Sequence record: MK250021.1 | Direction: 5' to 3' (one strand) | DNA length: 64,000 bases | Shown here: one piece after another, positions 5,326 through 47,629 of the stretch | Layout: each line of letters starts with the position of its first letter | Position numbering within the stretch: position 1 is the stretch's first letter | Notes under the pieces: model-generated | Database searches by the model: none | What the model saw: only the letters and a program-made list of their open reading frames with translations | Told to the model about the DNA's origin: nothing | Program-made: the position numbers and the translations under genes

Positions 5326-5357
5326 GATAATATATAAAATTAAATAAAAAATAAATT

Positions 5358-9329: not shown

Positions 9330-9341
9330 TGTATCTTTGTA
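9330..9341 (+). promoter_or_regulatory. Bacteroidota-type -7 promoter element
   Basis: TGTATCTTTGTA upstream of PRTase copy 2. Confidence 0.7.
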
Positions 9342-17867: not shown

Positions 17868-17909
17868 ATATTAATATTCTTATATTATGTATAATATTTA
17901 TTAAATAAA

Positions 17910-17947
17910 AAAGAACTGTAAATCTTTTTGATAATTTACAGTTCTTT
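17910..17947 (-). terminator. intrinsic terminator
   Basis: AAAGAACTGTAAAT / ATTTACAGTTCTTT immediately after the stop of the 1328-aa gene. Confidence 0.7.
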
Positions 17948-17965
17948 AATTTATGTATTATTATA

Positions 17966-20900: not shown

Positions 20901-21952
20901 GTTGCAGGTATTGTATATGATCCTCCTCTTATATTAGTTGTTCCAGATATACCAGATACCGTATAATTACTATTAGCACTTAATGTTTCTGGACCTTGAT
21001 TTGCATCAGTTCCACCACCGGATGTTGAACCAGAAGAATATTGATATACAGTTTTATGTAATGTATATTTTCTACTTAAACTAAATGTTACAGTTCCACC
21101 GGAGCTATATACTACAGTTGGACTTACAGAAAGAATAACGCTTTCTGTTGTTTTAGTTTCCCCTGTTTTAACTGATTTTACATTAGCGTCTTGTTTAACA
21201 GTAAATTCAGGGTGTGTTAGTGTAACACTATCTATTGTTGTTGATTTTTGGATAGTTCCGCCTGCGGCAATTGTTTTAACATTTGTTACACCTGATTCTG
21301 TTGTACCTTTTGTTGTTGCCGAAACGGTTGTAAACGTAACAGTTTCAGAAGCATCTTCTGTTTCACCGGAATTGAATGTTTTTCTGTATGTTAATTTACC
21401 AGAACTTACAGTTCCACCAGATGCAGGAATATTATCAACTGTGATAACGGCATTATCTAATTTAGTTACATACTTATCACGTTTTGTTTGAGTAATTGTT
21501 ATATTTGCTTGTTCATGTATATCGCCACGTAACCCAACTGCATATATTATAATAGTTCTATCTGATGAAGCATTATCTCTTTGTTCAAATGTAACACTAA
21601 AAGGATTATTATATGTATTTTGACCATACTAAGTTGGTGTATTATTTATTTTACAACCTGATGTCTCACCACTTTTAAAAGAGGCATTAGGATAGTTATA
21701 TACTCTTTCTTCTGTTCTTGTAGAAAAGCCTTCGCGTATTAAATATGTCTCTTTACGATATAAATTAAATGTTTGTGTTGTACCACCTTCCCATGATATA
21801 TTAGGTACAGTATTTGGGTCAGAACCGTATTCTATTTTAATTAAAGTTTCTGTTTTCTTTACATAGAATCTTTTACTGCTTTTCTAACCTTCCCATGATA
21901 CGTGACTATTTTTCTAAACATCTATTGCCTAATTACTATTTTTTATAATCAT
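17966..21952 (-). CDS. tail fibre/adhesin-like Ig-domain protein (1328 aa, at least 8 TAG): BACON-like N-half plus Listeria-Bacteroides (InlB B-repeat-like) repeats
   Basis: Single frame ATG 21952 to TAA 17966, interrupted only by TAG in the parts read; T/S-rich; PASGG and N-x-SSDRT...ITQ motifs; repeated (V/W)-x-x-NGG...PT(K/R)-x-(G/D)Y-x-F-x-GW...YA-x-W; one TAG falls at VYA*L where other repeats have a sense codon. Confidence 0.8.
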
Positions 21953-21970
21953 GATTAAATAATATTATTT

Positions 21971-23041
21971 TTAAAACTAATCCTTATATGCATTATATGT
22001 AGCAATTACATCTTTAAGATGAATATCAGGGAATAATTGTAATTTTTTCAATACCTATATATAATCCTATCTATTATAATATATATTTCTAGATATTCTA
22101 TAAGGATTCTTTCCAGTTATAACAGATATTAGAATATCGTCATTAAATGAAAGTTGCATATCTTTATAATCTCTATTCTTCGCACATATAAATAAAGCAG
22201 CAAGTCTCGCAACCATTTTATCAGGATTTGTTATCTTATCAAAACCACTATACTTACCGGTCATTAAGCATTTATCCATACGATCAATGTCTTTCTATGT
22301 AACTTTATATACTTTACCTGTACATGTTAATTCATCAGCAAGTCTCTTTGTGCTAAATATAGTTTCAACTTGTCCTTTTAATGCAATACTAATTTCATTA
22401 ATTTTCTTATTTACATTTGAAAACTATTCTTGATTAATCTTATCAATAACTTTATTAATAGACGCATTTTTATCTTTATCACCTGGTCGGCGTAAAGGCG
22501 TTGATGGATATTTAATTAATTTCCATATAACTTTATAATCTGTTCCAAAATTATTAAATACAACAGCCCATGATTTTAATACTTTTTCTTTATTTCTATA
22601 TGTAATAGTATAAGGTTCCTATTTAATTGTAAATTCAATTTTTTTACTCTATTCCGAACCTATATAACATATAAAATAATATACTTCCTGAAATTTTCCT
22701 GTTTCTGGATCAATAACTGAATTACGGTTAATTATAACCATTTTATTTTTATCAGATAATTTATCTTTATCCATCTTTGATGCCCAAAAGAAACCATTAT
22801 CCGTACATCTATCTATTTCATTCATAACAGCTACTACTGTATTGATTACCTAATTATTTAAATCGTATTTATTAATAAAATATTCATTTACCTCTTCTTG
22901 ATTATCACACTATCCTAACGATGTTATCTTTGTAGCATTTGAAATTAATTCAGATGTTTTATTTGATGCATCATCATTATATAAATCATCAAATTCATCA
23001 TCAAATAAACTTTCCAATAAAAGTTTGATATTCTTGTTCAT
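21971..23041 (-). CDS. hypothetical protein with LLE-SLFDD leader (356 aa, 9 TAG)
   Basis: ATG 23041 (MNKNIKLLLESLFDDEFDD) is open to TAA 21971 if TAG is sense; includes track ORF 22067..22279. Confidence 0.8.
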
Positions 23042-23117
23042 AAAACGTTAAAAAATACTTTTATTATTTATTTTTGATATATTTTCATTAATGTGTTTTC
23101 TTATTTCAAATAAATGT

Positions 23118-23129
23118 TGTATCTTTGTA
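23118..23129 (+). promoter_or_regulatory. Bacteroidota-type -7 promoter element
   Basis: TGTATCTTTGTA heading the operon that ends in the TonB-dependent receptor. Confidence 0.7.
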
Positions 23130-23154
23130 TTGAATTAAATTAAACAATTAAGTT

Positions 23155-23532
23155 ATGATATTAAATATTGATAATTATGAAATATTAAACTTTTATGGAT
23201 ATACGTCTGTTATTAAACAGGATGAACGTATCTATGAAGTTTCATCATTAGATAATTCACCCAATGAACATATGCGATATGAGAAGTTAAATATTTTTTA
23301 TAATAAAATAATAGATAAAATAAGAAATAAAATAGATAAGACAAATATTTTATATTATATATTAGACGATAATAAATGTGTATTTAAACTAAAACATGTT
23401 AAATCTGGAAACATTATCTATATCGGTAAATATGATTTTGAAATTTCCATAGGATTGGATTGTCATCAAAGATTTGGACATTCATATGATTTTATAACAA
23501 ATAAGGAAACATATAAAACAGAAGAATTATGA
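23155..23532 (+). CDS. hypothetical protein (125 aa)
   Basis: First gene after the promoter; ATGA overlap with the next gene. Confidence 0.7.
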   Translation: MILNIDNYEILNFYGYTSVIKQDERIYEVSSLDNSPNEHMRYEKLNIFYNKIIDKIRNKIDKTNILYYILDDNKCVFKLKHVKSGNIIYIGKYDFEISIGLDCHQRFGHSYDFITNKETYKTEEL

Positions 23533-23846
23533 TTATACATAATGCAAAGAATTGTAGAATTAAGGAAGAAGATAAACAAGTGTTAAAGAATGGAGGTATG
23601 TTCATTCTTATAACAATACTTATGATTGTTACTTATGCTTGTATTGTTATGCCTATTAGTATTATGCGAGAAAAGAAGTTTGTTGGTACTGATAATAAAA
23701 CTGAAGCACAATTTAAAATTATATTGAGAGACAAATATATTGATGAAGATTTTGTTCAGCAAATTAGCACGAGCGGATGGAATTCATATGAAGTATATGA
23801 TTCCAATATGAAGAAACATAGAATTATATGGAAAGAAGTGGAATAA
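23529..23846 (+). CDS. small membrane protein (105 aa)
   Basis: One hydrophobic helix (MFILITILMIVTYACIVMPISIM). Confidence 0.7.
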   Translation: MIIHNAKNCRIKEEDKQVLKNGGMFILITILMIVTYACIVMPISIMREKKFVGTDNKTEAQFKIILRDKYIDEDFVQQISTSGWNSYEVYDSNMKKHRIIWKEVE

Positions 23847-23932
23847 TGAATAGAAAAGAAACTTTATATACAACTATATCATTTATGTTAGGTATAATTA
23901 TGATATTAGTAGTAATTTATTTATTTTCTTGA
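23846..23932 (+). CDS. very small membrane peptide (28 aa)
   Basis: TAATG coupling with the upstream stop; MNRKETLYTTISFMLGIIMILVVIYLFS; below the track length cut-off. Confidence 0.45.
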   Translation: MNRKETLYTTISFMLGIIMILVVIYLFS

Positions 23933-23971
23933 TAATATAAAATAAGTTTAATTTTTAAATAAAATATCTAA

Positions 23972-26026
23972 ATGAATAAGATTATTTTTTCTATGCTCAT
24001 TATGGTAATGAGTATTGCTAACATGTATGCAGAAAATGTTTCTGATACAGTGAAGTTGAAAGAGGTAACTGTTACTTCTCTTTTCCGTAATAATGTGCAG
24101 ACAGGTAGTATGATTAATACATCTACACTTAAGTCTTTGAATCATGGTCAGGGAACAGATTATGTATTGCAAAGACTTCCTAATATTTATGCGTATAATG
24201 ATAATGGAACACAAATGGGATACTGTTATTTCCGTATGCGTGGCATGGGTCAGGAACGTATGAATGTTACATTGGATGGAATGCCTTGGAACGAAGCAGA
24301 AGATTTTGGATGTTATTTTAGTAATTCTCCAGATCTTATGTCTTCTATGCATACTATTAAGGTAGAGAAAGGTGCATCTGTAACTAATAATGGAACAGCT
24401 GCTTATGCAGGAAATGTTTCTCTTGAATCTGTAGATTTGAAGAAAGATACCGATTCTTATTTTGACCTTGGATATGGTTCATTTAATTCATCTCGAATTA
24501 CAGGTGTTTATAATATGGGACAGAAAGGACATTGGGGATTACATGTTCGTGGCACTGCACAGCAAACTGATGGTTATAAGGAGAATACTTACAATAATTC
24601 GAAGGCAATTACTATTAAGACCGGATATTTCTTTAATGAACGACATTCATTGGATTTCTTGACAATGACTGGTTATCATAGGAATGGACAGGGATTTCAG
24701 GGAATTACTGAAGATTTAATTCCGAAGCATCCGACACCATTTAAGCAGATGATTTCAGGTAATCGTCAACAGGAAACAGATGATTTCTTAACAACTTATA
24801 ATAGGTTTCAATATAAGGGAGTTCTTTCAGACAAAGTATTTCTAACATCATCTGTGTATTGGCAACATCAGACAGGTAATTACCGTATTGGTTGGGATGA
24901 TGAGACACGACCAACAGGAAGTGTATTGAATAACTATCATCTTAATTATAATTTGACCGGATTTAACACTATTGTAAAGTATTATCCTATTGATAATCTT
25001 TCTCTTACATCTGGTGTAAATGCTTATGTATATCATCGTAGACATCAGGGATATGATATTACAAATTCTGATAGTATTATCACGGCATGGAAAAATCCAG
25101 GACTTACACCATATTATGATAACTCAGGAACAAAACCAGATGTGAATGTATTTGCAAATGTAAAGTATGCACCAGTAAATAAGTTCACTATTGATGCTGC
25201 TGTTCAATATCGTTATACGTCATTGCATTATCGTGTAAATACACCAATGGATGAATATGATACAAAGTTTAATCATGATTGGAATTTTGTAAATTACAGT
25301 ATTGGACTTAATTATGATATTGATAAGTATTCAAAGGTATATGCACGTTATGCTGTAACAAACCGTGAACCATCCAGAACTGATTTATTCTGTGCAGAGT
25401 ATCGTTCAAATGAATCGGAGATGAATACAAAGAATGAGAGAGTTCATGATATTGAAGCAGGTTATGAGATCCGTAACAATAAGGTTAATTTCAATATTAA
25501 TGGTTTTTATATGAATTTCAGTAATGAACTTGTTGCAACCGGTGAACTTTCAAAGATGAATGGTCTTCCATTGCATAAGCAACATGATGCATACCGTCTT
25601 GGATTGGAACTTGCCCTTGATTATAATCCTATTAATACATTGCATTTCATTGCAAATGCGGCATGGTCAGAGAATAAATTAAAGAATATTGAGGGTAAGG
25701 AAATGAATCATACATTCTCACCTTCATCTACATTGTTTGCTGAAGCTAATTATACGGTTAATAAAATTAAGTTTGGTTTGAATACAAATTTCCGTTCATC
25801 AATGTATATGGATATTTATAATAAGAATAAACTTAAGGAGAATCTTACGTTAAATGCTTATGTAAATGCACGAGTATCAAAGATCGTAGAGTTGAACCTT
25901 GTATTGAATAACATTACAAATAGGCTTAACTTCTCTAATGGCTCTGTAGATATTCCAACCAATACTGCATATTATTTGGTTGATACACCATTTAATATGT
26001 TCGCTTCTGCAAAGTTTCATTTTTAA
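23972..26026 (+). CDS. TonB-dependent outer membrane receptor (684 aa)
   Basis: Signal peptide, LKEVTVTS, plug domain (RMRGMGQERMNVTLDGMPWNEAED...SPDLMSS...VEKG...AYAGNVSL), amphipathic beta strands, C-terminal Phe (AKFHF); no TAG. Confidence 0.9.
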   Translation: MNKIIFSMLIMVMSIANMYAENVSDTVKLKEVTVTSLFRNNVQTGSMINTSTLKSLNHGQGTDYVLQRLPNIYAYNDNGTQMGYCYFRMRGMGQERMNVTLDGMPWNEAEDFGCYFSNSPDLMSSMHTIKVEKGASVTNNGTAAYAGNVSLESVDLKKDTDSYFDLGYGSFNSSRITGVYNMGQKGHWGLHVRGTAQQTDGYKENTYNNSKAITIKTGYFFNERHSLDFLTMTGYHRNGQGFQGITEDLIPKHPTPFKQMISGNRQQETDDFLTTYNRFQYKGVLSDKVFLTSSVYWQHQTGNYRIGWDDETRPTGSVLNNYHLNYNLTGFNTIVKYYPIDNLSLTSGVNAYVYHRRHQGYDITNSDSIITAWKNPGLTPYYDNSGTKPDVNVFANVKYAPVNKFTIDAAVQYRYTSLHYRVNTPMDEYDTKFNHDWNFVNYSIGLNYDIDKYSKVYARYAVTNREPSRTDLFCAEYRSNESEMNTKNERVHDIEAGYEIRNNKVNFNINGFYMNFSNELVATGELSKMNGLPLHKQHDAYRLGLELALDYNPINTLHFIANAAWSENKLKNIEGKEMNHTFSPSSTLFAEANYTVNKIKFGLNTNFRSSMYMDIYNKNKLKENLTLNAYVNARVSKIVELNLVLNNITNRLNFSNGSVDIPTNTAYYLVDTPFNMFASAKFHF

Positions 26027-26069
26027 TAAATAAGGTGTCTTTTATACATATTTTTTTAATTAATTTAAT

Positions 26070-26101
26070 AAGGAGAATTAACACGGTAGTTAATTCTCCT
26101 T
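26070..26101. terminator. bidirectional intrinsic terminator
   Basis: AAGGAGAATTAAC / GTTAATTCTCCTT between convergent genes. Confidence 0.7.
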
Positions 26102-26108
26102 TATTTTT

Positions 26109-26474
26109 TTATTCATATGTAATATAATAATCTTTATTAGTTCTAACTTTTAATTTCTTTGCATTAGAAGATGAAATAAAAATAGTAATATCTTCATCTT
26201 TTAATTCATTAAAATCCTTATTAGAATTGATTGTAAGTTTACCATCATTCACATTATATGTAATGTTAGTAAATTTTGATTTAGTTCTGACAGAAACACA
26301 ATCAATAATATCATTGTAAATTCTAACTTTTGCAGGGACATTTACATAAACGACATTAATAGAATCTGTTAATAATGTTGGATTAACTAATGAATTTTCA
26401 TTAATGTTAATTTTACCAAAGCATACAGTGATGCTGAATATTCCTATAAGGAATAAAATAAATAATTTTTTCAT
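26109..26474 (-). CDS. secreted protein (121 aa), possibly GIN/DUF2807-like
   Basis: Signal peptide MKKLFILFLIGIFSITVCFG; beta-rich body; family call weak. Confidence 0.55.
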   Translation of the reverse strand: MKKLFILFLIGIFSITVCFGKININENSLVNPTLLTDSINVVYVNVPAKVRIYNDIIDCVSVRTKSKFTNITYNVNDGKLTINSNKDFNELKDEDITIFISSSNAKKLKVRTNKDYYITYE

Positions 26475-26613
26475 AACGTAATTTATTTAATTTTAAAATT
26501 TATTTTTAACTTTCTTTAACTATCATTTTATTTATCTGAATAATTCATATTTTTAATGTAAGAAAAAGTTTATTATAAATAATGAAATGAAAAATTGAAA
26601 ACTAATTTGATAA

Positions 26614-27870
26614 ATGAGTAAATTAAATGAATAGAATATAAATGAGTTTTTATGGACATGTGCAGGAGTTAATAAAGATGTATTAAGATTATACCCGAGT
26701 GAATATGCTAAATATGCTGGTAGTGGCGGAACTATTTTATTCACAGCATTAATGGCTATGATTTCTGGTGGATATGCGATGTTTTTTGTATTCAGTAATG
26801 TTATTGTTGCTTTTATATTCGCTATATTTTGGGGATTGCTTATATTTAACCTTGATAGATTTATTGTTAATTCCATGTATACAGATGGTAAAGATTCAAT
26901 AAGTTGGAGAAAATTAAAAGCAGCACTTCCTAGAATTATAATGGCAATATTTTTAGGTATAGTTATATCGACACCTCTCGAGATGAAGATATTTAATGAT
27001 AGAATTGAATCATAGTTATTGAAAGATAATATAGAGAGAATAAATTCAGCAAAGAATGAATCATCTGATTATAAAACAATTTCATTATTACAAACTGAAT
27101 AGAGTTAGTTATCAAAAGAAAGAAAACAACTGGTAGACGATTTACAAAAAGCATAGAAAGATTTAAAGGAAGAAGCAGAGGGAAATGCATTATCTGGTAT
27201 GGTTGGGCATGGATCTATATATAGAGACAAAGAGATTTATGTTAACCAATGTAAATAGTCATTATCTGAATGGGATAAACTTCATAAAGAAAGATTAACA
27301 ACTATATAGAAAAGAATAGATGACGTTAATCAACATATCAATAAGTTTGAAGATAAAGTTGATAATTTAAAAGAAGATGGATTTAGCGCACGTTATGAAG
27401 CGTTTTCAAATTTAAGAAAATAGAATTCATCTTTAGAAATTGTTTCATTAATGATAACAATGTTGTTTATAATAATAGAGATAACTCCTACATTTTTTAA
27501 ACTTATTATGATAGCAGGACCTTATGATGAACATATGAGAATTGAACAATATAAGATTTCTGCATATGTATAGAAAGAAAAGAATAATGTAGATACAGAT
27601 TTAAAAATAGATGAATATAATAATAAACAAAAATTAAAATCTATTATAAAAGATGACATAATTAATATTGAAGAAGATAATCAAAAACCTATTACATATT
27701 CATCTATTAAACCATTAACATTAGATGAAGAACCTGAAATCGTTCCTTATTAGGTGAAGTCAAATACAAAAATAGAAACAAAAACTATTACACCGAATAA
27801 AGAACTTGAATTTAAGAGGAATTCAAAGGGATAGTTATTACTAGATTTTTCATCAAGACATAAAGGTTAA
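26614..27870 (+). CDS. DUF4407-like multi-pass membrane/coiled-coil protein (418 aa, 11 TAG)
   Basis: FLWTCAG...EYAKYAGSGGTILFTALMAMISGGYA...WGLLIFNLDRFIV...LPRIIMAIFLGIVISTPLEMKIF, EAEG...GHG, IEITP..FK...GPYD; family motifs continue across the TAG codons. Confidence 0.85.
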
Positions 27871-27935
27871 AAATATTTAAAATGAACATTAAGTAATATA
27901 AACTTAATGTTCATTTTTTAATATAAAAAATATTA

Positions 27936-27947
27936 TGTATCTTTGTA
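27936..27947 (+). promoter_or_regulatory. Bacteroidota-type -7 promoter element
   Basis: TGTATCTTTGTA upstream of 27974. Confidence 0.7.
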
Positions 27948-27973
27948 ATATAATAATTTAAACATTAAATAAT

Positions 27974-28981
27974 ATGGAACAGAAACTTATTTTGAAAATG
28001 TGTAAGCCTGCAACGAAGCTTAATAAATATATCATTACTGTTAAAGGCACGTATAATAATATGTTACCTTATGAAACAAAAATGGTAACAGTAGATGCAG
28101 ATATGATGAATGATTTTGTATTGTTGTTCTTATCATATATGGGTAATAGAAATTGGAAGCATACATGGAAGGATTGTAAGTTTGGAGAAGATTTCAAACA
28201 TGGTCCATTGCAGACATATCTTGGAGCATTTACAGATGATTGTCATTATCCTTGTATTGATATTAATTGGAATGATGTTATTTCTGTAAAACTTTCATAT
28301 ATTGATGAAAATTCCACTTATTATGAGTGTACACTTCCTGATGTGGAAGAGTTGTATGAAACCGAGGAATATTTCTTGAAAGAACTTAAAGAAAAGTTTA
28401 ATGTATTCAATAAGAATGATAAGAGAGACGATTTGGATGATGGTACAGAACTAGTAGATTCATATGAGCTGGAACTTGTTCGTAACATTCTTCGTTCGAC
28501 TGGTAAGTGGGATGATAGAGATATTGATAATTTGTTCTTTATCAATAACGATATTGGGTTTACTTCAATATGTGCAAGAGATTCTTATTATGATGATTTA
28601 TTGAAGGTCATTAAACAGGAATATGCAAAGAGTGCAACCGGTGTTGAATATGGTGGATTTAAACCAGAAACTTTTGAAAAAGTTCATAATGCTATTATGA
28701 AGTCTGATCTTCCAGATGAAACAAAATCTTTTGCTATCGACATTTGTGGTAAGTACAATAAGAATAATATTTTATCTGAAAATCAGAAGAAAGAATTAAA
28801 AAAGATTATTGAGTCTTTTAATATTCTTAATGGTACTTATGGTTGTGTTGGACCTAATGGTTGGAGTGGTATTTACATTCAGCATGTTATTGATCCAGAA
28901 CAGATTGATTTTGATGATTTTGATGAGAATGAAGTCATTAAATATGAAGGTGAAACTTATATTATTCATGAAGGAGATTAA
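27974..28981 (+). CDS. hypothetical protein (335 aa)
   Basis: Long open frame, no TAG. Confidence 0.75.
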   Translation: MEQKLILKMCKPATKLNKYIITVKGTYNNMLPYETKMVTVDADMMNDFVLLFLSYMGNRNWKHTWKDCKFGEDFKHGPLQTYLGAFTDDCHYPCIDINWNDVISVKLSYIDENSTYYECTLPDVEELYETEEYFLKELKEKFNVFNKNDKRDDLDDGTELVDSYELELVRNILRSTGKWDDRDIDNLFFINNDIGFTSICARDSYYDDLLKVIKQEYAKSATGVEYGGFKPETFEKVHNAIMKSDLPDETKSFAIDICGKYNKNNILSENQKKELKKIIESFNILNGTYGCVGPNGWSGIYIQHVIDPEQIDFDDFDENEVIKYEGETYIIHEGD

Positions 28982-28984
28982 TAT

Positions 28985-29381
28985 ATGATTTTAACAGAAA
29001 TAATATCAATAAGGAATTCTTATAGGATTCTTTAGCGGAGTTCTTGGTGAAAAAGGAGATAGTGAAGAATATACATATAAGTTAGGACCTATAGATGATT
29101 TATCACCATTATTTAAATGGGGAAATCGTTTTATAATTCCATGTGTATTATTTGCTTCACCAATAGGTTTTCTTGGAATTCCTTTATTGTATTTAGGCTT
29201 ATGTATAATTTTCGCATGTTTTGGAATTGATATTTATATATTAAGTGATAATACATTGAATATTATAGGACCTTATATATTACTATATTTTATATCATTG
29301 ATGATAGGATATAGTATAGGATGTTTTGTGACTAAAAAAGTAATATCTAATTTAATAAAGAAATATAATCATGAAAAATAA
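28985..29381 (+). pseudogene. membrane protein with apparent +1 frameshift near 29012
   Basis: ATG 28985 gives MILTEIISI; removing one A at 29011-29012 joins GILIGFFSGVLGEK... to TAA 29381, a multi-TM protein of about 131 aa. Confidence 0.5.
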
Positions 29382-29883
29382 TAAGTTTTATATTATTTTA
29401 GGATATAATGCACTTGATGAATCATATTGTGGTTATGTAGAGAATTCATTCTCTATGGGATGTGATGATGAGAGAGTACAGTTGTATTCTGTAAGTAAAG
29501 GAGATTTTCCGTGGAAGAATCGAGATTTTCCGGAGAGAAAGAAAATAGCAAAGAAATATCTAAAAGAAAATGGTGGTAGAAAAGCTTCTTTTGCACATGA
29601 TTATATTCCTGATGCTTATATGAATCCAAATTCTCCAAACCAATGGATTTGGTTTTATTTGCGTGATATTGCAGACAATTTGAATAAGAAACATTATAAT
29701 AATTGTTATTGGCAAGTATTTCGTGTTAACAGTAAACATTGCCCTGTTAATATAGATATGAAAGAATATTATAAGATTCAACATAATAAGAAATATAGAA
29801 TGACATTAACGAAATATGAAATAAGAAATATTAAATTTACAGTACAAGATCCTTTATTATTAGACTTTATACGTAATATTTAA
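29371..29883 (+). CDS. hypothetical protein (170 aa)
   Basis: Open frame, last gene before the ncRNA island. Confidence 0.75.
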   Translation: MKNNKFYIILGYNALDESYCGYVENSFSMGCDDERVQLYSVSKGDFPWKNRDFPERKKIAKKYLKENGGRKASFAHDYIPDAYMNPNSPNQWIWFYLRDIADNLNKKHYNNCYWQVFRVNSKHCPVNIDMKEYYKIQHNKKYRMTLTKYEIRNIKFTVQDPLLLDFIRNI

Positions 29884-29895
29884 TATAAAAAATAT

Positions 29896-30174
29896 ACAGT
29901 ATATAATTTTGTTATCTAAGTACATGATAATAAAATAGTGCATATCTAGTAAGACTATATGTATTTCAGTAATGGTACTGAAAGTGTTAATCGTTACTCA
30001 CGAAACAATATAAGAGTTATATGTTATATAGTAAAGACTAATATTGCAAAAGGTTAATACGCATATATAACATATATACCATTTGAGATTATGGTGAATA
30101 ATTGCAATTAGAATGTAACCATAATAATATGGCGGACCAATATAACATTCTGGGTTCGATTCCCTATATACTGT
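29896..30174 (+). ncRNA. 279-nt multi-hairpin RNA with tRNA-like acceptor/T-arm closure
   Basis: ACAGTATATA (29896) pairs with TATATACTGT (30165); GGG-TTCGATT-CCC T-loop at 30152-30164; internal helices TTTCAGTA/TACTGAAA, ATATGTTATATA/TATATAACATAT, AGAATGT/ACATTCT. Confidence 0.7.
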
Positions 30175-30229
30175 CTAAATAAAAAATTAAAAAAAGATTC
30201 ATAATTATTTTTTTAATTAAAAAAGAATG

Positions 30230-30241
30230 TGTATCTTTGTA
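30230..30241 (+). promoter_or_regulatory. Bacteroidota-type -7 promoter element driving non-coding RNAs
   Basis: TGTATCTTTGTA with no ORF downstream for more than 1.1 kb. Confidence 0.7.
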
Positions 30242-30255
30242 TTGTAAGAAATAAA

Positions 30256-30377
30256 AATGGTGATACAACCTATAAGCCATAGGTAACATGAGTTCGGTAA
30301 CCTCATGGTTCGTAAGTCGTGATAACGAATAGTCTCGGTAATAGTTGAAAAACCTTCATCGGTTATGTATCATTATT
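30256..30377 (+). ncRNA. structured RNA (closing stem plus at least three internal hairpins)
   Basis: AATGGTGATACA / TGTATCATTATT 12-bp closure; CCTAT/ATAGG, CATGAG/CTCATG and TTCGT/ACGAA hairpins. Confidence 0.55.
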
Positions 30378-30583
30378 TAACATTCATATGAGAATTAACG
30401 AAATGTCTCATATGAGCATGAGGAGTATTCCAACGGAACCGGTGTGTTTGGATTTTTAGTTGTGCATTTTTTTAATCTGACTATATTGTTGAGAAACAAT
30501 GAAAAAGAAGATACGTCGTCAGTACAAGTCCATATAATAATTTCGAAATAAAAATGGAAACTGTTAAAAATCGTATCTATTTT

Positions 30584-30681
30584 GGTTATGTTACATAATG
30601 GTTAATGAGGTATCTAATTGATATTTTAATATCAATGGAAGAAAGGTATTGCGGTGACGGGTTCGAGTCCCTCCATAACCA
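30584..30681 (+). tRNA. non-canonical tRNA-like gene with a hairpin inserted in the anticodon loop
   Basis: Perfect 7-bp acceptor GGTTATG/CATAACC plus discriminator A; D-loop AATGGTTA; T-loop TTCGAGT with a bulged stem; the anticodon loop holds about 30 nt including an ATTGATA/TATCAAT hairpin; anticodon not assignable. Confidence 0.6.
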
Positions 30682-30901
30682 CTCCTTATAATAATGAAAA
30701 GGATGCAATTATCTAACATAGATATTATTATAGTATAAGAAATTATGATAATTCTTAAAATGATAATCAAGAGATTGAAGTAACTAATTAATGTATAGTT
30801 ACTAAGGCGAAAGTATAACTGCAATTATATTAGTAGTTGGCGTTTAAAAGATTGAAGAAAATTATTTGCAGATAATTTTTGGATTGATATTAAATGTAAA
30901 A

Positions 30902-30995
30902 ATTATAATAGTGTAGCGGGAATGCACGTTCGATGATAAATCGGAAAGGGATTAACGGTATGACGTTATTAAGGGTTCGACTCCCTCTTATAAAC
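30902..30995 (+). tRNA. degenerate tRNA-like gene with long variable arm
   Basis: A/T-only acceptor (6 of 7 pairs), D-arm GTGT/GCAC, anticodon arm TTCGA-TGATAAA-TCGGA lacking U33, variable hairpin AACG/CGTT, T-arm GGG-TTCGACT-CCC. Confidence 0.55.
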
Positions 30996-31001
30996 AAATT
31001 T

Positions 31002-31156
31002 AAATACATATATTCTCACGAAGAGCGAGTAAGAGAAGGTGAGCAAATTATGTCTAATGTTATAAGTGATCATAATAACAGCTAAAACATAACAGAATTA
31101 TCTTAACGTAGGAGCTGTAAAAGGATGAACGTATGGTAACATCATTATATGTATTT
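31002..31156 (+). ncRNA. structured RNA with 11-bp closing stem
   Basis: AAATACATATA / TATATGTATTT; internal TTCTC/GAGAA and ACAGCT/AGCTGT helices. Confidence 0.5.
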
Positions 31157-31282
31157 TTATTGAATTTTTAATTGTTTGAAAATAACTTAATATATGTACT
31201 ACATCAAACTAATGACATATAAAATCAAACCAAGATGATAAGACAGAATTAAGTTATTTTTAATTTGTTTTGTTTATTTTCT

Positions 31283-31315
31283 AAAAGTCTATAATGGTTT
31301 TCATTATAGACTTTT
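31283..31315 (+). terminator. intrinsic terminator ending the ncRNA island
   Basis: AAAAGTCTATAATG / CATTATAGACTTTT. Confidence 0.7.
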
Positions 31316-31332
31316 TTATTTAAAATAAAATG

Positions 31333-31342
31333 TGTATCTTTG
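31333..31342 (+). promoter_or_regulatory. Bacteroidota-type -7 promoter element
   Basis: TGTATCTTTG heading the nadR-pnuC operon. Confidence 0.65.
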
Positions 31343-31382
31343 AAATATAAATTATAAGTAAAATAAAGTTGAATTATTAATT

Positions 31383-31796
31383 ATGTATTATATAAATCAT
31401 GAATTAGTTAATGTAGTAGAGATTAATCCTTTTGAAATTGAATCTGGAAACTTTCCAGATGAGATGATAACTATAGATGAATTAATAGATAGAATAAAGA
31501 ATAAGAAACCTATTAAACAAGGTATTAAAATTCATTTTAATATGTATGACATCATTTATGATGTAAATTCACATATATTTATGCATGACACATTCATTCA
31601 TATTCCTACTAATACAAAGATATTTGTAGAATATGATGAGAATTGGGGATGGGAACGTACATTTCTTCTTATTCCTAATTATTCAGAAAAAATATGGATA
31701 GGAGATAATAATGAAGATTGTTGGTGGGATGCTACTCACAATGAAGGTTCTTATTCTTTTGAGATGAAATCTTTTATTGAAATAGAAATAGATTAA
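31383..31796 (+). CDS. hypothetical protein (137 aa)
   Basis: Open frame after the promoter. Confidence 0.7.
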   Translation: MYYINHELVNVVEINPFEIESGNFPDEMITIDELIDRIKNKKPIKQGIKIHFNMYDIIYDVNSHIFMHDTFIHIPTNTKIFVEYDENWGWERTFLLIPNYSEKIWIGDNNEDCWWDATHNEGSYSFEMKSFIEIEID

Positions 31797-31816
31797 TATA
31801 TTTAAATTTAATAAAA

Positions 31817-32974
31817 ATGAGTAAGAATATAGGAATTTGTTTTGGCGGATATTGTCCAATGCATCAAGGTCATCTTGATGTTATTATGCGAGCAAAGAAA
31901 GAATCAGATATTGTTTATGTTGTTGTATGTGGATATACAGATGAACCACGTGCGAATGAAATAGGTTTGAATATAAAGCAACGAGAACGACTTATTAGAG
32001 AATATTTTAAAGGCGATGAGATTATAAAAGTTGTTACTGTTAATGATACAGAATTAGGTATTGATGAAAGTATGTCTGAACATAATTGGAAAGTATGGAC
32101 TGATTATGTGAAGAAACTTATTGTTAACAAAGTTTTAGACCATAAAGATAATTGGCCTTTTACAGTAGACGATACTATTAACGCATTTGAGTTGAAACTT
32201 ACTTTTTATGTTGGCGAGAAGTTTTATGTTAAATCATTAGAGAAATTAAATTATAATGTTGTATTGGTAGGATATGACAGCAATTCACCTTCTAACAGAA
32301 GTAATGATATTTCTGCAACTCTTATACGTCAGAGACCACAACTTTACTGGAATAAGATTGTATCTACATTCAAACCAAAACTAACAAAGAAGATTCTTGT
32401 ATTAGGAACAGCATCAGAAGGCAAATCAACTCTTGTAAAAGATATTGGTAATTATTTTCAGGTTCCATATACTACTGAATTTGGTAGGGATTATATGGCG
32501 AAACATTGTATGTTAGATCCAGATATTACAGTAAACGATTTTGTTGAATTCCTTATAGGACAAAGACAATATTATTTTGATGCACTTAACAGTGATAAGA
32601 ATAAAGGTGTTATTATTTCTGATACTGATAATCTCGTTACTCTTATGTATGCGAAGGCATATACAATGGATAAGAACATGCAGATTACTGAAAAAGAATA
32701 TAATGATATATTGTTACCACTTGCAAAATCATTGCAGACTAATGTAGATTGGGATGTAATTTATCTTATCAAACCACATAATACATTTGTCGATGATGGA
32801 ACACGTTATATGGAGCAAAGTTCTATTGAAGAACGTATAAAAAATTATCATATTCTTGTTAAATTATTGGAGGACTTTGATTTACTTCATAAGGTTATAG
32901 AACTAGATGGTACATATCTTGAGCATTTTGATTATGTAAAGAATTATATAAATACACTCTATGAAAAGTATTAA
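31817..32974 (+). CDS. nadR: NadR-like NMN adenylyltransferase / nicotinamide riboside kinase (no HTH)
   Basis: Cytidylyltransferase-fold HxGH (PMHQGH), ISATLIR, P-loop GTASEGKST, EFGRDY, ISDTD. Confidence 0.9.
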   Translation: MSKNIGICFGGYCPMHQGHLDVIMRAKKESDIVYVVVCGYTDEPRANEIGLNIKQRERLIREYFKGDEIIKVVTVNDTELGIDESMSEHNWKVWTDYVKKLIVNKVLDHKDNWPFTVDDTINAFELKLTFYVGEKFYVKSLEKLNYNVVLVGYDSNSPSNRSNDISATLIRQRPQLYWNKIVSTFKPKLTKKILVLGTASEGKSTLVKDIGNYFQVPYTTEFGRDYMAKHCMLDPDITVNDFVEFLIGQRQYYFDALNSDKNKGVIISDTDNLVTLMYAKAYTMDKNMQITEKEYNDILLPLAKSLQTNVDWDVIYLIKPHNTFVDDGTRYMEQSSIEERIKNYHILVKLLEDFDLLHKVIELDGTYLEHFDYVKNYINTLYEKY

Positions 32975-33623
32975 TAATATTTTATATACAGAGTTTATAA
33001 AAGGAAGAAACATATTTGAACATATGTTTCTTCTTGTAGGTATAATATTACAATTTATTGTATATTATATTACAAACGATACAATGATTTCATTAATATC
33101 TGGAGTAACAGGTATTATATCTGTTGTATTATGTTCACAGAGAAAAATTTCATTTTATTTCTTTGGATTTATACAATTATTTACTTATATGTATTTAGCA
33201 TGGCAGCAGAAATTTTATGGTGAATTAGTAGAAAATATATTCTATATAATTACCATGATTATAGGTATTGTTACATGGTTAACGAATTATAATAAGGATG
33301 AACAAATAGTAGAATCTAAAAGACTTTCTAATATACAGTTAAGTATAATAAGTAGTATAATGATTTTATTGTGTATTTTATTTGGGTATTATATGAGTAA
33401 TTATACAGATAATACACAACCATATATGGATGCTTTTTCTACAATACCGGCATTTATAGCACAAACATTATTGATGATGAGATATAGGGAACAATGGATA
33501 TTTTGGATTATAATTGATATTGTATCTATATTCATGTGGGGAATTGTAGGGAATTGGATAATGGTTATACAATTCATATTTTGGACGTTAAATTGTTTAT
33601 ACGGTTATATAAAATGGAAATAA
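32961..33623 (+). CDS. pnuC: PnuC-family nicotinamide riboside/vitamin transporter
   Basis: Multi-TM 220 aa; LISGVTGIISVVL, YMDAFSTIP, RYREQWIFWIIIDIVSI motifs; overlaps nadR. Confidence 0.9.
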   Translation: MKSINNILYTEFIKGRNIFEHMFLLVGIILQFIVYYITNDTMISLISGVTGIISVVLCSQRKISFYFFGFIQLFTYMYLAWQQKFYGELVENIFYIITMIIGIVTWLTNYNKDEQIVESKRLSNIQLSIISSIMILLCILFGYYMSNYTDNTQPYMDAFSTIPAFIAQTLLMMRYREQWIFWIIIDIVSIFMWGIVGNWIMVIQFIFWTLNCLYGYIKWK

Positions 33624-33630
33624 TGTAAAC

Positions 33631-33852
33631 ATGGCAGGATTTGTTATTATTGTAATTGTTATTTGCATAACTGTTTATGCGATATATGATTCTAAGCATA
33701 CATCAGAAGTAGAGCAAACATTCTGGGGTAAAGATAAAAGTGATTCATCCAGATTAAAAAAAGTTAATGAAAGAATTACATCATTAATAAGTAGAGTGGA
33801 ATTACTTGAAAATAAAGTAAAGAGATTAGAAAATAATAATATAATAGAATAA
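33631..33852 (+). CDS. small membrane/coiled-coil protein (73 aa)
   Basis: N-terminal TM helix plus heptad tail. Confidence 0.65.
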   Translation: MAGFVIIVIVICITVYAIYDSKHTSEVEQTFWGKDKSDSSRLKKVNERITSLISRVELLENKVKRLENNNIIE

Positions 33853-33853
33853 A

Positions 33854-34306
33854 ATGGAGCGGACAAATTTTGAAGTATATGATTGGTTGAAAGAACATCA
33901 AAAAGAAAATAATTATTCAGACCAATTTATTGAAGCATATAAAGAATGTTATTTTTTAAATAGGTTATCTGGTAAATTTTTTCTTGGAACATACGCGGGT
34001 TATTCAGTAAAGCCTGATAATAGTGATAAATCTTATTTCGTAGAAGACGGAATTAGAGGACAAGTAAAAGGATATTTTACAGTTTTAAATGGGAAACTTA
34101 TTCAACTTGATCCTTTATCTGATATTCAAAATTATGATAAGTATACCAAATTAAAGGATAATCTACATAAATATATGTATACTAGACTTGAAAATATTGA
34201 GATGCTGAGAAAAATTTATTCAGATAGAACTGATGAAATAAAAACCCAAATAGATGATCATATTAATTCATTGAATACAATAATTTATCTATTATCTAAA
34301 TATTAA
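33854..34306 (+). CDS. hypothetical protein (150 aa)
   Basis: Open frame in operon. Confidence 0.7.
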   Translation: MERTNFEVYDWLKEHQKENNYSDQFIEAYKECYFLNRLSGKFFLGTYAGYSVKPDNSDKSYFVEDGIRGQVKGYFTVLNGKLIQLDPLSDIQNYDKYTKLKDNLHKYMYTRLENIEMLRKIYSDRTDEIKTQIDDHINSLNTIIYLLSKY

Positions 34307-34319
34307 TAATTAACAAAAT

Positions 34320-34490
34320 ATGATTATGAATTTTATAAGTTGGATCTGTATTATATATACAGCATTTACATTGGTTTGTTTTGTATGGCTAACATATGCT
34401 ATTAAGAAAGCTCCATTAGTAGATCCTCAAGAACCATTTTTAAAAGGTGATATAAAATCAGAAGATCTAGAAGAAGATAAGGAGGAATAA
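34320..34490 (+). CDS. small membrane protein (56 aa)
   Basis: MIMNFISWICIIYTAFTLVCFVWLTYAIKKAP...; fills the gap between genes; missed by the track. Confidence 0.6.
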   Translation: MIMNFISWICIIYTAFTLVCFVWLTYAIKKAPLVDPQEPFLKGDIKSEDLEEDKEE

Positions 34491-34493
34491 GTT

Positions 34494-35255
34494 ATGGCTT
34501 ACATAGATAAAACATATATATCTGATTATCAGCAGTTTATACAAGTTAGAGATTGGTGTAAAGATAAAAAAGTAGAATTAAAAAATGGATTAGTGTATAA
34601 TGCTATTGATTTCCTTATGTATCCTGATATAACAGAAGAAGAATTCAATAGTTGGAAAAATGAAATTATTCAACGACATATAAAAACATATAATGAATCA
34701 AAGGAAGACGCAGAAAAACATTTTGAAATTCCTCTTTGGAATACACCAACATATTTCGATATTTGGCTTATAAGAAATTGCCCTATTGATTTTATTCAAA
34801 ATAGGTTAAAAGAACAATATGGTGAAGAATATAATCAAATAAAGAATTATAGATCTGAACATGATACATATCAGAGAAATGGATTAGGGAAGAATTTTCA
34901 TTATAAGGTAATTGAAAAACCTAACTGGAAACCAAGATATAATTTTATTTATACTGATAGACATAGTAATAAGAAAGTATATAAAGAAAGTAGGAAATCT
35001 TGGTGGTTTGTTGAACTTCGAGATTTATCAGGTAATGATATAATGTGGGAAGCAAATCAGGAGTATAATTATTGGACTAATTGGATTGAAGCATTACCAT
35101 TTACATCTAATATGATGGATATTAGGAAAAAGAAAAATCTTAATATTCACTCTATTATTAGAATGATAAAACATTGGGATTTACCTGCTAATACACAAGT
35201 TAAAGTTGTAAATAGATACTTTAATTATGGGTGGATAATTAACATTAAGAAATAA
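34494..35255 (+). CDS. hypothetical protein (253 aa)
   Basis: Open frame with a GGAGG-type RBS upstream; followed by a hairpin. Confidence 0.75.
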   Translation: MAYIDKTYISDYQQFIQVRDWCKDKKVELKNGLVYNAIDFLMYPDITEEEFNSWKNEIIQRHIKTYNESKEDAEKHFEIPLWNTPTYFDIWLIRNCPIDFIQNRLKEQYGEEYNQIKNYRSEHDTYQRNGLGKNFHYKVIEKPNWKPRYNFIYTDRHSNKKVYKESRKSWWFVELRDLSGNDIMWEANQEYNYWTNWIEALPFTSNMMDIRKKKNLNIHSIIRMIKHWDLPANTQVKVVNRYFNYGWIINIKK

Positions 35256-35328
35256 TATTAATAGGATGATATAAACTAATATATCATCCTATTATTTTAA
35301 TAAATATTTAAATGTTAATTTTTATTAA

Positions 35329-36393
35329 ATGAATAAATTAATTAAGAAATTAATGGAGGGATTATTTGATGATTTTGATGATGAAATTTTATCAAATTCA
35401 GATAATTCAAATAATGTATCTCAATAGATAATTGAAACGGAAGATAAACCTAAAATTAAAGAATGGTTGTTAGATAATATTATTTGTAAATATGGAACAC
35501 CATTTAAATGTGATGAAGGTAATGATATTGAATATACATTTGAATCAGATGGATTACATTGTAATTTAAAATTTAATGTACAAGATGCAAAATTTATGAA
35601 TTCTATTCCAGATTATGTTAAAATTAATAAAATAACTTGTAATACTGTAGAATTTGCAGACTTTATTAATTTACCTAAAGAAATAGATGGGACATTAAAT
35701 ATAAAAGGATGTAAGGAAAAAGATTTAAATGTACAATTACCAGAGAAATTAGGTGTATTATCGCTTATTAATTGTAAAATACGTTCATTGAAAGGATTAA
35801 GTAATACATGTAAATCAATAGAGCATCTTTGTATAGAAAATTGTAATATGTTTACTTCATTTAATGGGATTCCAGATAATGTTGGATTTATATAGTTAAT
35901 TAAATGTAAGAAAATAGTAGATTTAGAAGGAATTCCAGATACAGTAGAGAGAATTGTATTAGTTTCATTACCTTCATTTGAAAGTTTAAAAGGATGTCCA
36001 AATAAATTAAGTAATGGATTGTATATATAGGAGTGTCCATATTTAACCACATTAGCTTATTGTCCATCATTAATAATGGACCAATGTGAAATACATGATT
36101 GTATGTTATATCAGTTAGATATGAAAAATACAAGAATTTGTGGTACATTTAAATTAAGTAATAATAATTTATCAGATTTAGAAAATGGACCAAAACAGAT
36201 AGACGGATCATATATAGTTTCGGAACCGTATTTAGCAAAATTTAAAGCTAATGAAACTATTATGACAAATGCGTATAATAATGCGGAATTTATATATCAA
36301 GTTAGGAAAAAATATTTTAAAGGAAATAAAAATGACATGCCATAGATGAACAATGGTGTAAAAATTGTATGTCAATATTTAGAAGATCTCTAA
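35329..36393 (+). CDS. leucine-rich-repeat-like protein with LME-GLFDD leader (354 aa, 4 TAG)
   Basis: Repeats SLKGLSN / SFNGIPD / DLEGIPD / SLKGCPN continue across TAG; joins track ORFs 35467..35895 and 36076..36345. Confidence 0.8.
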
Positions 36394-37262: not shown

Positions 37263-37405
37263 AATTTATTAAAATTAAATGTTAATGTTAAATCTAAATT
37301 TTTTAATTACTTAATGTATATGATAAGTATAAGAAAAAGTCTATTATAAATAGAATAAAATATAAAATATTAAAGTAAATAATGATTAATAACAAATAGA
37401 ATTTA

Positions 37406-38539
37406 ATGGATGATATATTAGATGCAATATCAAAAGGATTAAAAGAAAGTTTAAATATAGAAGAGCAAATCCATCCATATAATGGTGTTTTAACGGATAT
37501 AAGAGATTACGAATCTGTATTTCATTCTCCAAATTTTGAATTATATAAATTAAATGAAAAATATCATGAAGTATGTATATCTCAATAGATATTAAATAAT
37601 ATTATAAAAATAATTAAAGATAATAAAAATAATTTAGGAAAAGACATATATACAAATTATTGCTTTAAAATATATAAAGTTAATAATCATAAAACATATA
37701 AAATATATAAATCAATTAATATTAATAAAGATCACCCTATATATGTAAATTTATATTCTAATAAAAGTAATGTATATGGTAAAACAGAAAATAGACTTAT
37801 ATCTAATGATATAAATTTAGATAATGATCATATAAGAATATATATAAATGTTTATTATATTAATATGGAAAAATTTATATATTCTGTATTAAAACATGAA
37901 TTAACACATGTTGTTGAAATGTATTCTGCTAAAAAGTTTAATAATATTAATAATTTAAAAAATACTATAGGAATTGATAAGGATAATGATATAATGTTAG
38001 ATATAAATCCATTAGCAAAAAATATGTTAAATAGGATGGTTTACTTATTTTCTAATACTGAACATAATGCACACATAAATGGTTTAGCTGAATTTATCAA
38101 TAAATTATCACCAACAGAAATAAAAAAATATACAAAATATATACAACATGAAGATGATGATGAAAATATTAAAGTAATTAATAATATAAATAATCCTATA
38201 TATAATTTTATGAGAAATTATGATGATTTAGATATATTAACAAATTATCAGGAATTTGAAGATTATATGTTTGATTTAAAAAGTTATTTAGAAAACAATG
38301 ATTTATTACCAATTTTTTATTTAGGTTATTTATTATAGAAACATCATTTAATATATAACAAAACTTAGATAAATTGGGATTTTATTAAAAATTATATGGA
38401 TAAAAAATATAAAAATTATAGTAAATATCATAATATTGCTGTATAGATAGTAAGTTTCTATGATTATAAAATAAAACAATATAGAGAAGACATATATAAA
38501 ATAATATATAAGAAATTTAAAGAAAAGAAAATTATTTAA
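37406..38539 (+). CDS. putative Zn metalloprotease (HExxH; 377 aa, 4 TAG)
   Basis: VLKHELTHVVE followed by FSNTEHNAH (gluzincin-like third ligand); frame continuous through TAG. Confidence 0.7.
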
Positions 38540-47576: not shown

Positions 47577-47619
47577 AATCCTTTATATTTAATTGTTTAT
47601 TATTCATTTATTAATAATG

Positions 47620-47629
47620 CAAAGATACA
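47620..47629 (-). promoter_or_regulatory. Bacteroidota-type -7 promoter element
   Basis: TGTATCTTTG upstream of the helicase. Confidence 0.65.

Follow-up and report, generated by a model that had tools for sequence, protein, structure and literature searches.

Does a bacteriophage carry a complete route leading from a precursor found outside the cell to nicotinamide adenine dinucleotide (NAD+) itself? The question is raised by a locus of Prevotella phage Lak-B2 in which the gene of a TonB-dependent receptor (TBDR) lies near a nadR-pnuC pair. The window that we analysed is the first 64 kb (64,000 nucleotides) of this genome (MK250021.1; 549,839 bp; source baboon faeces, Kenya), and its positions 23000-34000 match the Lak-B2 record with 100% identity at the same coordinates; identity is 99% to a further eight genomes of Lak-B and ~80% to those of Lak-A and Lak-C. 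An earlier sequence-only reading of the window had taken the three genes for a possible uptake-to-NAD+ route, with superinfection exclusion or thiamine scavenging as alternatives, and had named the co-occurrence of the genes across phages and the phylogeny of the receptor as ways to check it. Both comparisons lend that reading their support at the level of sequence and, with a probability that we put at about two in three, the three genes would constitute a phage-borne, three-compartment route leading from an external pyridine nucleoside to NAD+.

The receptor and the nadR-pnuC pair

The three genes are as follows:

23972-26026, plus strand: TBDR, 684 aa, unbroken open reading frame (ORF)
31817-32974, plus strand: bifunctional NadR lacking the helix-turn-helix (HTH) domain (TIGR01526, 3e-56; phrog_3462, 4e-59)
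32961-33623, plus strand: PnuC nicotinamide-riboside carrier, 220 aa (TIGR01528; phrog_1880)

The receptor gene proved to be intact and free of TAG at exactly the coordinates first given for it. Its product starts with a hydrophobic Sec-type signal peptide ending in ...MYA before E, with no lipobox Cys, and finishes with a Phe residue, the C-terminal aromatic of a beta-signal; between them lies a TonB-box-like stretch (KLKEVTVTS) whose L-x-E-V-x-V pattern is aligned in every family member, the TonB box and the plug motif of this receptor being conserved, with W106, E108, E110 and D111 as conserved plug residues. Pfam Plug (PF07715) and TonB_dep_Rec (PF00593) are found on homologues of 41-97% identity, and the AlphaFold2 model (pLDDT 71.8, pTM 0.74) places a plug within a barrel of ~22 strands that resembles solved TonB-dependent transporters (Fiu, PqqU, FyuA, YncD and FecA; Foldseek E 1e-32 to 1e-28, TM 0.7-0.8). 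These matches confirm the fold and carry no information on the ligand. A sequence search of PDB chains returned zero matches at E <= 1, and NCBIfam and PHROGs hold no family specific for this receptor, giving weak plug matches only. With signal peptide, beta-signal, plug, barrel and TonB box all present, the product is assigned on its sequence to the TonB-dependent transporter (TBDT) superfamily, and we propose it as the putative outer-membrane gate for nicotinamide riboside (NR) or a related NAD+ precursor. A search of the Lak-B2 GenBank record for a TonB C-terminal domain came up empty, a soft absence given the limited sensitivity of this first pass.

NadR spans positions 63-404 of the 411-position full NadR model and finds its closest solved match in 6GYE (Lactococcus lactis NadR, 8.8e-47); it also matches Bas30_86 (9X6F, 3.6e-15), the enzyme of the phage NAD+ reconstitution pathway NARP3. 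Its HxGH (PMHQGH), SATLIR (ISxTxxR), Walker A (GTASEGKST), DTD and DDGxR motifs align with those of L. lactis NadR, so that the catalytic motifs of both domains, the nicotinamide mononucleotide (NMN) adenylyltransferase (NMNAT) and the ribosylnicotinamide kinase (RNK), are covered. PnuC scores 129.5 bits on TIGR01528, for which the cut-off is 42.45, and matches Neisseria mucosa PnuC (4QTN) at 9.3e-25. The two genes lie on the same strand with a 14-nt overlap and thus form a single operon. Both are intact, and the roughly 6 kb placed between receptor and pair in the sequence-only reading amount to 5.79 kb from the TBDR stop to the nadR start.

Co-occurrence of the three genes in phages

Homologues of the TBDR were retrieved from 20 viral loci of IMG/VR. 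In every one of the 18 whose receptor is full-length, NadR and PnuC follow downstream on the receptor's strand, in most cases tightly packed; 12 of these receptors are only 38-41% identical to that of Lak-B2. Among metagenomic contexts on phage-like contigs (34-473 kb, carrying gyrase, IF3, T4-type RNA ligase or portal genes) the pair accompanies the receptor in 8 of 9, and of the GenBank phages that encode a homologue the three largest (LR756501, LR745206 and LR756502) all display the order TBDR-PnuC-NadR. The IMG/VR loci and the metagenome contigs may share phage lineages, so these counts include related lineages and are not all independent. Even so, the co-occurrence that the sequence-only reading called for is what the comparison found. 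In contexts L002, L104 and P0106 the genes touch or overlap within a tight operon of the order TBDR-NadR-PnuC; in L005 the separation is by a 73-aa ORF only. Since the relatives are so compact, we interpret the 5.8-kb gap of Lak A/B/C as a lineage-specific insertion into a compact module.

Further genes of NAD+ metabolism lie around the module in relatives. NadE lies immediately upstream of the TBDR in LR756501, a Nudix gene directly upstream of the receptor in LR756502, and a PncA-like gene near the module in L002. NAD+ islands surround the receptor in related huge phages at L103:485-14073, in the P0011 context (PARG, Nudix and NadE) and at L087:11043-16466, the first of them in the order PncA-PncB-Nudix-NadE...PnuC...TBDR-Thg1-NadR, with a Thg1-like gene between receptor and NadR. 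Neither NadE nor PncA was found in the Lak-B2 GenBank record or in Lak A/B/C at the limited sensitivity of the first pass, again a soft absence; lacking both, Lak A/B/C could complete only the route from NR or NMN.

Two unusual loci deserve separate mention. At L122:10001-11935 (IMGVR_UViG_3300022654_000841) only the first 293 receptor residues are matched, PnuC follows ~400 nt on and NadR was not detected; the module may have decayed or been rearranged here. Contig L012 (JAFRDD010000051.1), labelled as a Clostridia bacterium metagenome-assembled genome (MAG), encodes all three proteins (TBDR, NadR, PnuC) with 41-50% identity to those of Lak-B2, and the receptor falls within the megaphage clade, so it is probably a megaphage contig misbinned into a Firmicutes MAG.

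Bacterial counterparts and phylogeny of the receptor

Our bacterial survey covered 80 loci from species-representative genomes. In 17 Bacteroidota loci (Chitinophagaceae, one Prevotella MAG and Dysgonomonas) TBDR, PnuC and NadR follow each other on one strand, the PnuC ORF being called in 13 of the 17, and the receptor is 30-32% identical to that of Lak over its full length. A further 22 loci (Gemmatimonadota, Schleiferiaceae and other Bacteroidia) have a divergent Pnu gene, mostly together with a short NadR-like kinase.

In a careful IQ-TREE phylogeny rooted on thiamine receptors linked to the thiamine pyrophosphate (TPP) riboswitch, all non-thiamine receptors form one clade (100/100). Within it the 17 gut-megaphage receptors form a clade of their own (100/99); joined by three orphan receptors of Bacteroidales, this clade is the sister group (99/96) of the receptors of the TBDR-PnuC-NadR operons, and environmental huge-phage receptors stand on a separate branch. 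The Lak TBDR therefore lies inside the PnuC/NadR-linked receptor clade, whose genes nearly always stand beside those two partners in bacteria and huge phages alike, and outside the riboswitch-linked thiamine receptors, and the phylogeny, the other proposed check, groups phage TBDRs with their chromosomal counterparts from TBDR-PnuC-NadR loci and away from the thiamine type. Orphan chromosomal TBDRs of Barnesiella and Bacteroidaceae MAGs from ruminant and other guts (L007-L011, e.g. L009:7989-9983), the sister group of the gut-megaphage receptors, were seen among housekeeping genes, between a radical-SAM activase gene and tgt, near dnaA; they could derive from phage-to-bacterium transfer or represent the donor lineage.

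A probably mosaic module under purifying selection

The receptor and the pair appear to have different histories. Compared with L. lactis NadR the Lak enzyme reaches 163 bits, and with the NadRs of the Bacteroidota operons 35-57 bits; for Lak PnuC the scores are 91 bits with the N. mucosa protein, 20-54 bits with the PnuCs of these operons and 15 bits with PnuT. The gene order differs likewise, being TBDR-NadR-PnuC in gut megaphages and TBDR-PnuC-NadR in bacteria and environmental phages. To judge from these similarities, the gut-megaphage module looks like a Bacteroidota receptor joined to a NadR-PnuC pair of another lineage: since Lak NadR and PnuC are far nearer to the L. lactis and N. mucosa proteins than to the Bacteroidota operons, the three functions would have been brought together from different sources, and the independent joining of the same three functions argues for a functional link between them. 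The ratio of non-synonymous to synonymous substitution rates (dN/dS) between Lak-B2 and Lak-A1 is 0.14 for TBDR, 0.17 for nadR and 0.20 for pnuC, indicating purifying selection. The G+C content at third codon positions (GC3) is 0.19-0.24 in the three genes, as in other phage genes, so that they are long-resident and not recent imports.

On this basis we lean, by a narrow balance of probability, towards the broader view that huge phages of Bacteroidota carry a three-tier import of NAD+ precursors that was assembled at least twice, as a mosaic in the gut phages and like a whole bacterial operon in the environmental ones, and that was kept throughout the Lak-like radiation.

Transcription units and the stretch that splits the module

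The features relevant to the expression of the module, and those of the stretch that separates its parts, are listed here by position:

23118-23129, plus strand: promoter motif TGTATCTTTGTA with a T-rich stretch before it; equivalent site in Lak-A1
23155-23532, plus strand: ORF of unknown function, 125 aa, no PHROG or NCBIfam match
23529-23846, plus strand: ORF of unknown function, 105 aa, no PHROG or NCBIfam match
23846-23932, plus strand: putative 28-codon hydrophobic mini-ORF whose ATG overlaps the preceding stop codon
26070-26101, plus strand: intrinsic-terminator-like hairpin of 13 pairs followed by a T run, closing the TBDR unit
26109-31315, no strand assigned: 5.2 kb between the two parts of the module in Lak A/B/C, with ORFs of unknown function
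30584-30682: over-long tRNA-like gene (ARAGORN), Ile-GAT, 99 nt
30902-30995: over-long tRNA-like gene (ARAGORN), Tyr-ATA, 94 nt
31283-31315: terminator-like hairpin within the splitting stretch
31333-31344, plus strand: promoter motif TGTATCTTTGAA, start of the nadR-pnuC unit
31383-31796, plus strand: ORF of unknown function, 137 aa, between promoter and nadR in Lak-B2, no family match
611-622 (minus), 2924-2935 (minus), 5315-5326, 9330-9341, 23118-23129, 27936-27947, 30230-30241, 31333-31344 and 47618-47629 (minus): all copies of the extended motif, T-rich stretch plus (a)tgTGTATCTTTGTA

The motif shared by these sites is a T-rich stretch followed by tgTGTATCTTTGTA, the core of which fits the Bacteroidota -7 element TAnnTTTG. 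Of the generic -7 pattern the window has 98 copies where 116 are expected, hence no enrichment; the longer motif is enriched, and informative value lies only in this longer, phage-specific form; a sigma-70 scan was uninformative in this AT-rich DNA. The extended context accompanies 9 of the 12 TATCTTTG sites of the window, most of these being 25-45 nt before a start codon, and the motif is kept at equivalent sites in Lak-A1. The copy at 23118-23129 is the likely start of a transcription unit that ends with the TBDR, lying 850 nt upstream of it with two ORFs and the mini-ORF in between; nothing promoter-like was seen directly before the receptor gene. In Lak-A1 the motif that corresponds to the one at 31333 stands only 40 nt before nadR itself. 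Given the separate motifs and the hairpin after the TBDR, receptor and pair would be separate transcription units under one promoter type. The host-type early promoter that the sequence-only reading had put before both receptor and pair thus holds for the transcription units (motifs at 23118 and 31333) and fails for the individual genes. From the promoter type and the lack of recoded codons we infer early expression of the module genes.

The splitting stretch, which holds an ORF that needs TAG as a sense codon (26614-27870) and the motif copies at 27936 and 30230, is missing from most related phages, where nadR comes directly after the TBDR. Between the second of these motifs and the terminator-like hairpin, 1.1 kb (30230-31330) are devoid of a convincing ORF, and folding of its first 300 nt was no better than that of shuffled sequence (z -1.6). 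The Rfam tRNA model covers both tRNA-like genes end to end at a sub-threshold score (22-23 bits), which suggests, as far as sequence can tell, tRNAs with inserts or introns. No informative family matches were obtained for the ORFs in 23155-23846, 26109-31796 and 33631-36393.

Genetic code and neighbouring genes

The window has a G+C content of 26% and many of its genes are open only if TAG is read as sense, in line with published Lak phages:

3347-5251: gyrase B-like gene, upstream of the module
13869-15293: gyrase/topoisomerase IV A-like gene, upstream of the module
7792-9252 (minus), 12671-13843, 16743-23041 (minus), 26614-27870, 35329-36393, 37382-38539, 39800-41425 and 48320-49255: TAG-dependent genes with 1-11 in-frame TAG each

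The genes neighbouring the module require TAG to be read as glutamine (Q), at 1-11 recoded codons apiece; TBDR, nadR and pnuC have zero in-frame TAG or TGA and all three stop at TAA. TAG-dependent genes were seen to alternate with TAG-free ones (gyrase, TBDR, nadR and pnuC), a mixture expected from the early/late split of a recoded phage. The order gyrB, topoisomerase A, ..., TBDR, NadR, PnuC recurs in the distant megaphage contigs L001 and L005, and the region is therefore syntenic across the lineage.

Three further genes were noted. An ORF of 1328 aa on the minus strand (17966-21952, 8 TAG=Q codons) ends in Listeria/Bacteroides-type repeats (TIGR02543) and may encode a surface-binding or fibre protein. 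A plus-strand ORF of 354 aa (35329-36393, 4 TAG=Q codons) weakly matches effector families of the EspK/GogB type and two PHROGs that have no known function, over ~70 residues and with E in the range 1e-4 to 1e-6; these matches probably reflect a shared repeat region and are too weak for a name. Elsewhere in the Lak-B2 genome, beyond the window, the minus strand encodes a LigA-like NAD+-dependent DNA ligase at 257473-259443 (TIGR00575, 5.6e-50; open frame of 712 aa), which would use up NAD+ on the phage's own account.

Proposed route and competing explanations

We envisage that early in infection host RNA polymerase would transcribe both units and that unmodified host ribosomes would translate them. 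The TBDR precursor would be exported by Sec, inserted by the barrel assembly machinery (BAM) and energised by the host TonB-ExbBD complex, host TonB being proposed because no phage TonB was found. The receptor might then capture NR, possibly NMN or another NAD+-derived pyridine compound, at the low concentrations of the gut lumen and deliver it to the periplasm, from which PnuC would carry it across the inner membrane by PnuC-mediated diffusion; the kinase domain of NadR would trap it as NMN and the adenylyltransferase domain would make NAD+. The product could feed NAD+-dependent enzymes of the phage, such as the LigA-like ligase, during a long infection and, by analogy with NARP3 in coliphages, could also refill a pool drained by host NADase defences, two purposes that are mutually compatible and not exclusive. 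The ligand, the dependence on TonB and the anti-defence purpose of the Lak module are what we infer.

It had been noticed that the plug of the Lak TBDR resembles those of thiamine-type receptors, and a vitamin B1 receptor of the OMthi type has arguments of its own: the plug family motif is shared with riboswitch-linked thiamine receptors, both receptor types work with Pnu-family carriers, and they are homologous, the Lak receptor (P0001) scoring ~200 bits over 600 residues at 26-27% identity against the thiamine receptors of the very genomes whose NR-operon receptors it matches at ~295 bits over full length. That resemblance, however, is one of family, since RxRGxxQxRxNxTLDGxP(W/L)NExED is common to all members; the shared motif stands, the specific affiliation does not, for by tree and bit score the Lak receptor goes with the NR-operon type, and where that type has the acidic NExED the thiamine receptors read ...NNPES... 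instead. The TPP riboswitch model (RF00059) gave no match at E <= 0.01 in 22000-36000, and it succeeds in control genomes of Prevotella, Dysgonomonas and Chitinophaga, each having a riboswitch followed by a receptor of 740-823 aa and two of the three then a Pnu gene, the OMthi-PnuT layout; no Rfam riboswitch of any kind was found in this region or around the bacterial homologues. Moreover, the thiamine type is split off in the tree with 100/100, the carrier that goes with the receptor reaches 129 bits with the PnuC model but only 15 bits with PnuT genes beside riboswitch-linked receptors, and the partner enzyme is NadR and no thiamine kinase. These comparisons largely refute a thiamine receptor, which we regard as very improbable, and thiamine scavenging likewise found no support.

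More akin to the route from NR is one with the same pathway and another cargo, in which the TBDR would import NMN, NAD+ or nicotinamide/niacin with periplasmic conversion to NR or some other route. A gene neighbourhood cannot tell related pyridine compounds apart, relatives have PncA, PncB and NadE beside the TBDR, and in Haemophilus it is general knowledge that NAD and NMN pass through the outer membrane and are cut back to NR, which then reaches PnuC. No periplasmic nucleotidase or phosphatase was seen in the Lak module, however, and the invariant partners of the receptor are PnuC and NadR, so that with NadE and PncA missing from Lak A/B/C only the NR/NMN route can be completed there; we therefore hold another cargo to be unlikely. 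The HAD-like gene between TBDR and PnuC in LR756501 was considered as a periplasmic enzyme converting NMN to NR and dropped because it has no signal peptide. A TBDR with no transport role at all, be it a decoy, a means of superinfection exclusion or a replacement of a host receptor whose nearness to nadR-pnuC is historical, appears improbable. TBDRs are common phage receptors, the Lak TBDR belongs to another transcription unit than nadR-pnuC, and a preprint groups it with phage OmpA and OmpX as envelope-remodelling proteins (bioRxiv 10.64898/2026.10.24.761521). Yet the linkage with NadR and PnuC survives divergence to 38-41% identity and a changed gene order, chromosomal homologues sit within NR salvage operons, and a conserved TonB box, a plug motif and a dN/dS of 0.14 would be superfluous for a decoy.

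Several observations nevertheless count against the import of NR by this receptor. Measured ligands are lacking throughout the clade, in bacteria and viruses alike, which makes the whole case one of gene neighbourhood, and that neighbourhood has its gaps: in Lak A/B/C receptor and pair are 5.8 kb apart in separate transcription units, the megaphage contig L006 has neither NadR nor PnuC within 8 kb, and the bacterial genes closest to it, from Barnesiella and Bacteroidaceae MAGs (34-36% identity), stand as orphans in genomes that have a Pnu gene elsewhere and no NadR. The plug, where a ligand would bind, is poorly modelled, with several segments at pLDDT <50, and no RNA runs containing this TBDR were found. 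In other bacteria porins can admit NR because of its small size, and our argument that a TBDT is needed is one of analogy with thiamine and OMthi only. An anti-defence purpose would presuppose that Prevotella hosts deplete NAD+ to defend themselves against Lak phages.

Depleting NAD+ is one of the major strategies of bacteria against phages, and descriptions of the reconstitution pathways NARP1-3 have until now placed them in the cytoplasm or the inner membrane only. If the receptor is the outer-membrane step, Lak would be the first phage to supply every transport layer for an environmental NAD+ precursor, a ligand would be at hand for an uncharacterised TBDT family widespread in Bacteroidota and some Gemmatimonadota, and the fitness of abundant gut megaphages would be tied to the availability of NR in the gut lumen. 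If the three-tier import is true of the huge phages of Bacteroidota more widely, phage genes would point to a hitherto uncharacterised NR-specific family of TonB-dependent transporters in Bacteroidota, and NARP3-type counter-defence in bacteria with a tight outer membrane would need an outer-membrane gate of its own. The model predicts that the PnuC-NadR pair needs the receptor at low external NR only.

Comparison with known systems

The closest functional parallel is NARP3, a phage NAD+ reconstitution pathway formed by the PnuC Bas30_87 and the HTH-less NadR Bas30_86 (Sci Adv, August 2026; PMC13464706). It is a two-gene system, found mostly in phages of Enterobacteriaceae, which by experiment in coliphages, and for Bas30 only, restores NAD+ against Sir2-HerA; an outer-membrane step is not mentioned (PMC13464706). 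Lak also has an adjacent PnuC-type NR carrier and HTH-less NMNAT-RNK NadR, which on sequence would perform the same proposed chemistry from NR to NMN to NAD+. It differs in that Lak, like dozens of huge phages associated with Bacteroidota, adds a dedicated TonB-dependent receptor, and in that its NadR is nearer to that of L. lactis (163 bits) than to Bas30_86 (59 bits); the anti-defence rescue shown by assay for Bas30 is a putative one in the Lak module.

The uptake of thiamine through OMthi and PnuT in Bacteroides thetaiotaomicron was reportedly described by Costliow and Degnan in 2017. This system (OMthi being BT2390; review PMC6977713) likewise combines a TonB-dependent receptor, a Pnu-family facilitator and a cytoplasmic trapping kinase, and the receptors are homologous with a common plug motif. 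The thiamine loci, however, are marked by a TPP riboswitch, by PnuT and by a receptor of greater length (740-823 aa), and the Lak receptor belongs to a sister family tied to PnuC and NadR. The chromosomal TBDR-PnuC-NadR operons of a Prevotella sp. MAG, Dysgonomonas and Chitinophaga unite the same three functions with sister-clade receptors; their order is TBDR-PnuC-NadR, the phage NadR and PnuC are not derived from them, and the module of Lak A/B/C is split by 5.8 kb. A limited literature search found no description of such a bacterial operon or of an NR-specific TBDT, which is weak evidence.

In Haemophilus influenzae, V-factor uptake proceeds through the porin OmpP2, NadN, e(P4), PnuC and NadR. 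As is generally known, this too is a multi-compartment route from an external pyridine compound to NAD+ that ends with PnuC and NadR; there a porin and periplasmic trimming enzymes do the work, whereas Lak has a TonB-dependent transporter and no trimming enzyme was seen in it.

Genes of the same kind as the Lak TBDR have been recorded before under other readings. A 2021 paper annotated 'SusC' in Mar_Mega_1 and LR745206 as a carbohydrate importer (PMC9723777), and the LR745206 receptor is a homologue of the Lak TBDR with 29.7% identity. A preprint of October 2026 described the Lak protein HP2985 as a 22-strand TonB-dependent receptor alongside OmpA and OmpX, reported transcription of the Lak TBDR in a gut metatranscriptome, run ERR8165413 with its paired Lak MAG, and remarked in passing on NMN-transport genes near 22-strand outer-membrane proteins (bioRxiv 10.64898/2026.10.24.761521). 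Both differ from our interpretation in reading carbohydrate uptake or envelope remodelling and in making no link to a NadR/PnuC pathway, NARP3 or a specific receptor family. A Microbiome 2024 paper recorded both pnuC and nadR for jumbo phages of the gut and listed no TonB receptor. Therefore, the core pair and the listing of the receptor are known, and the link of the TBDR to NadR-PnuC, the likely ligand of the receptor family and the mosaic assembly of the module are new.

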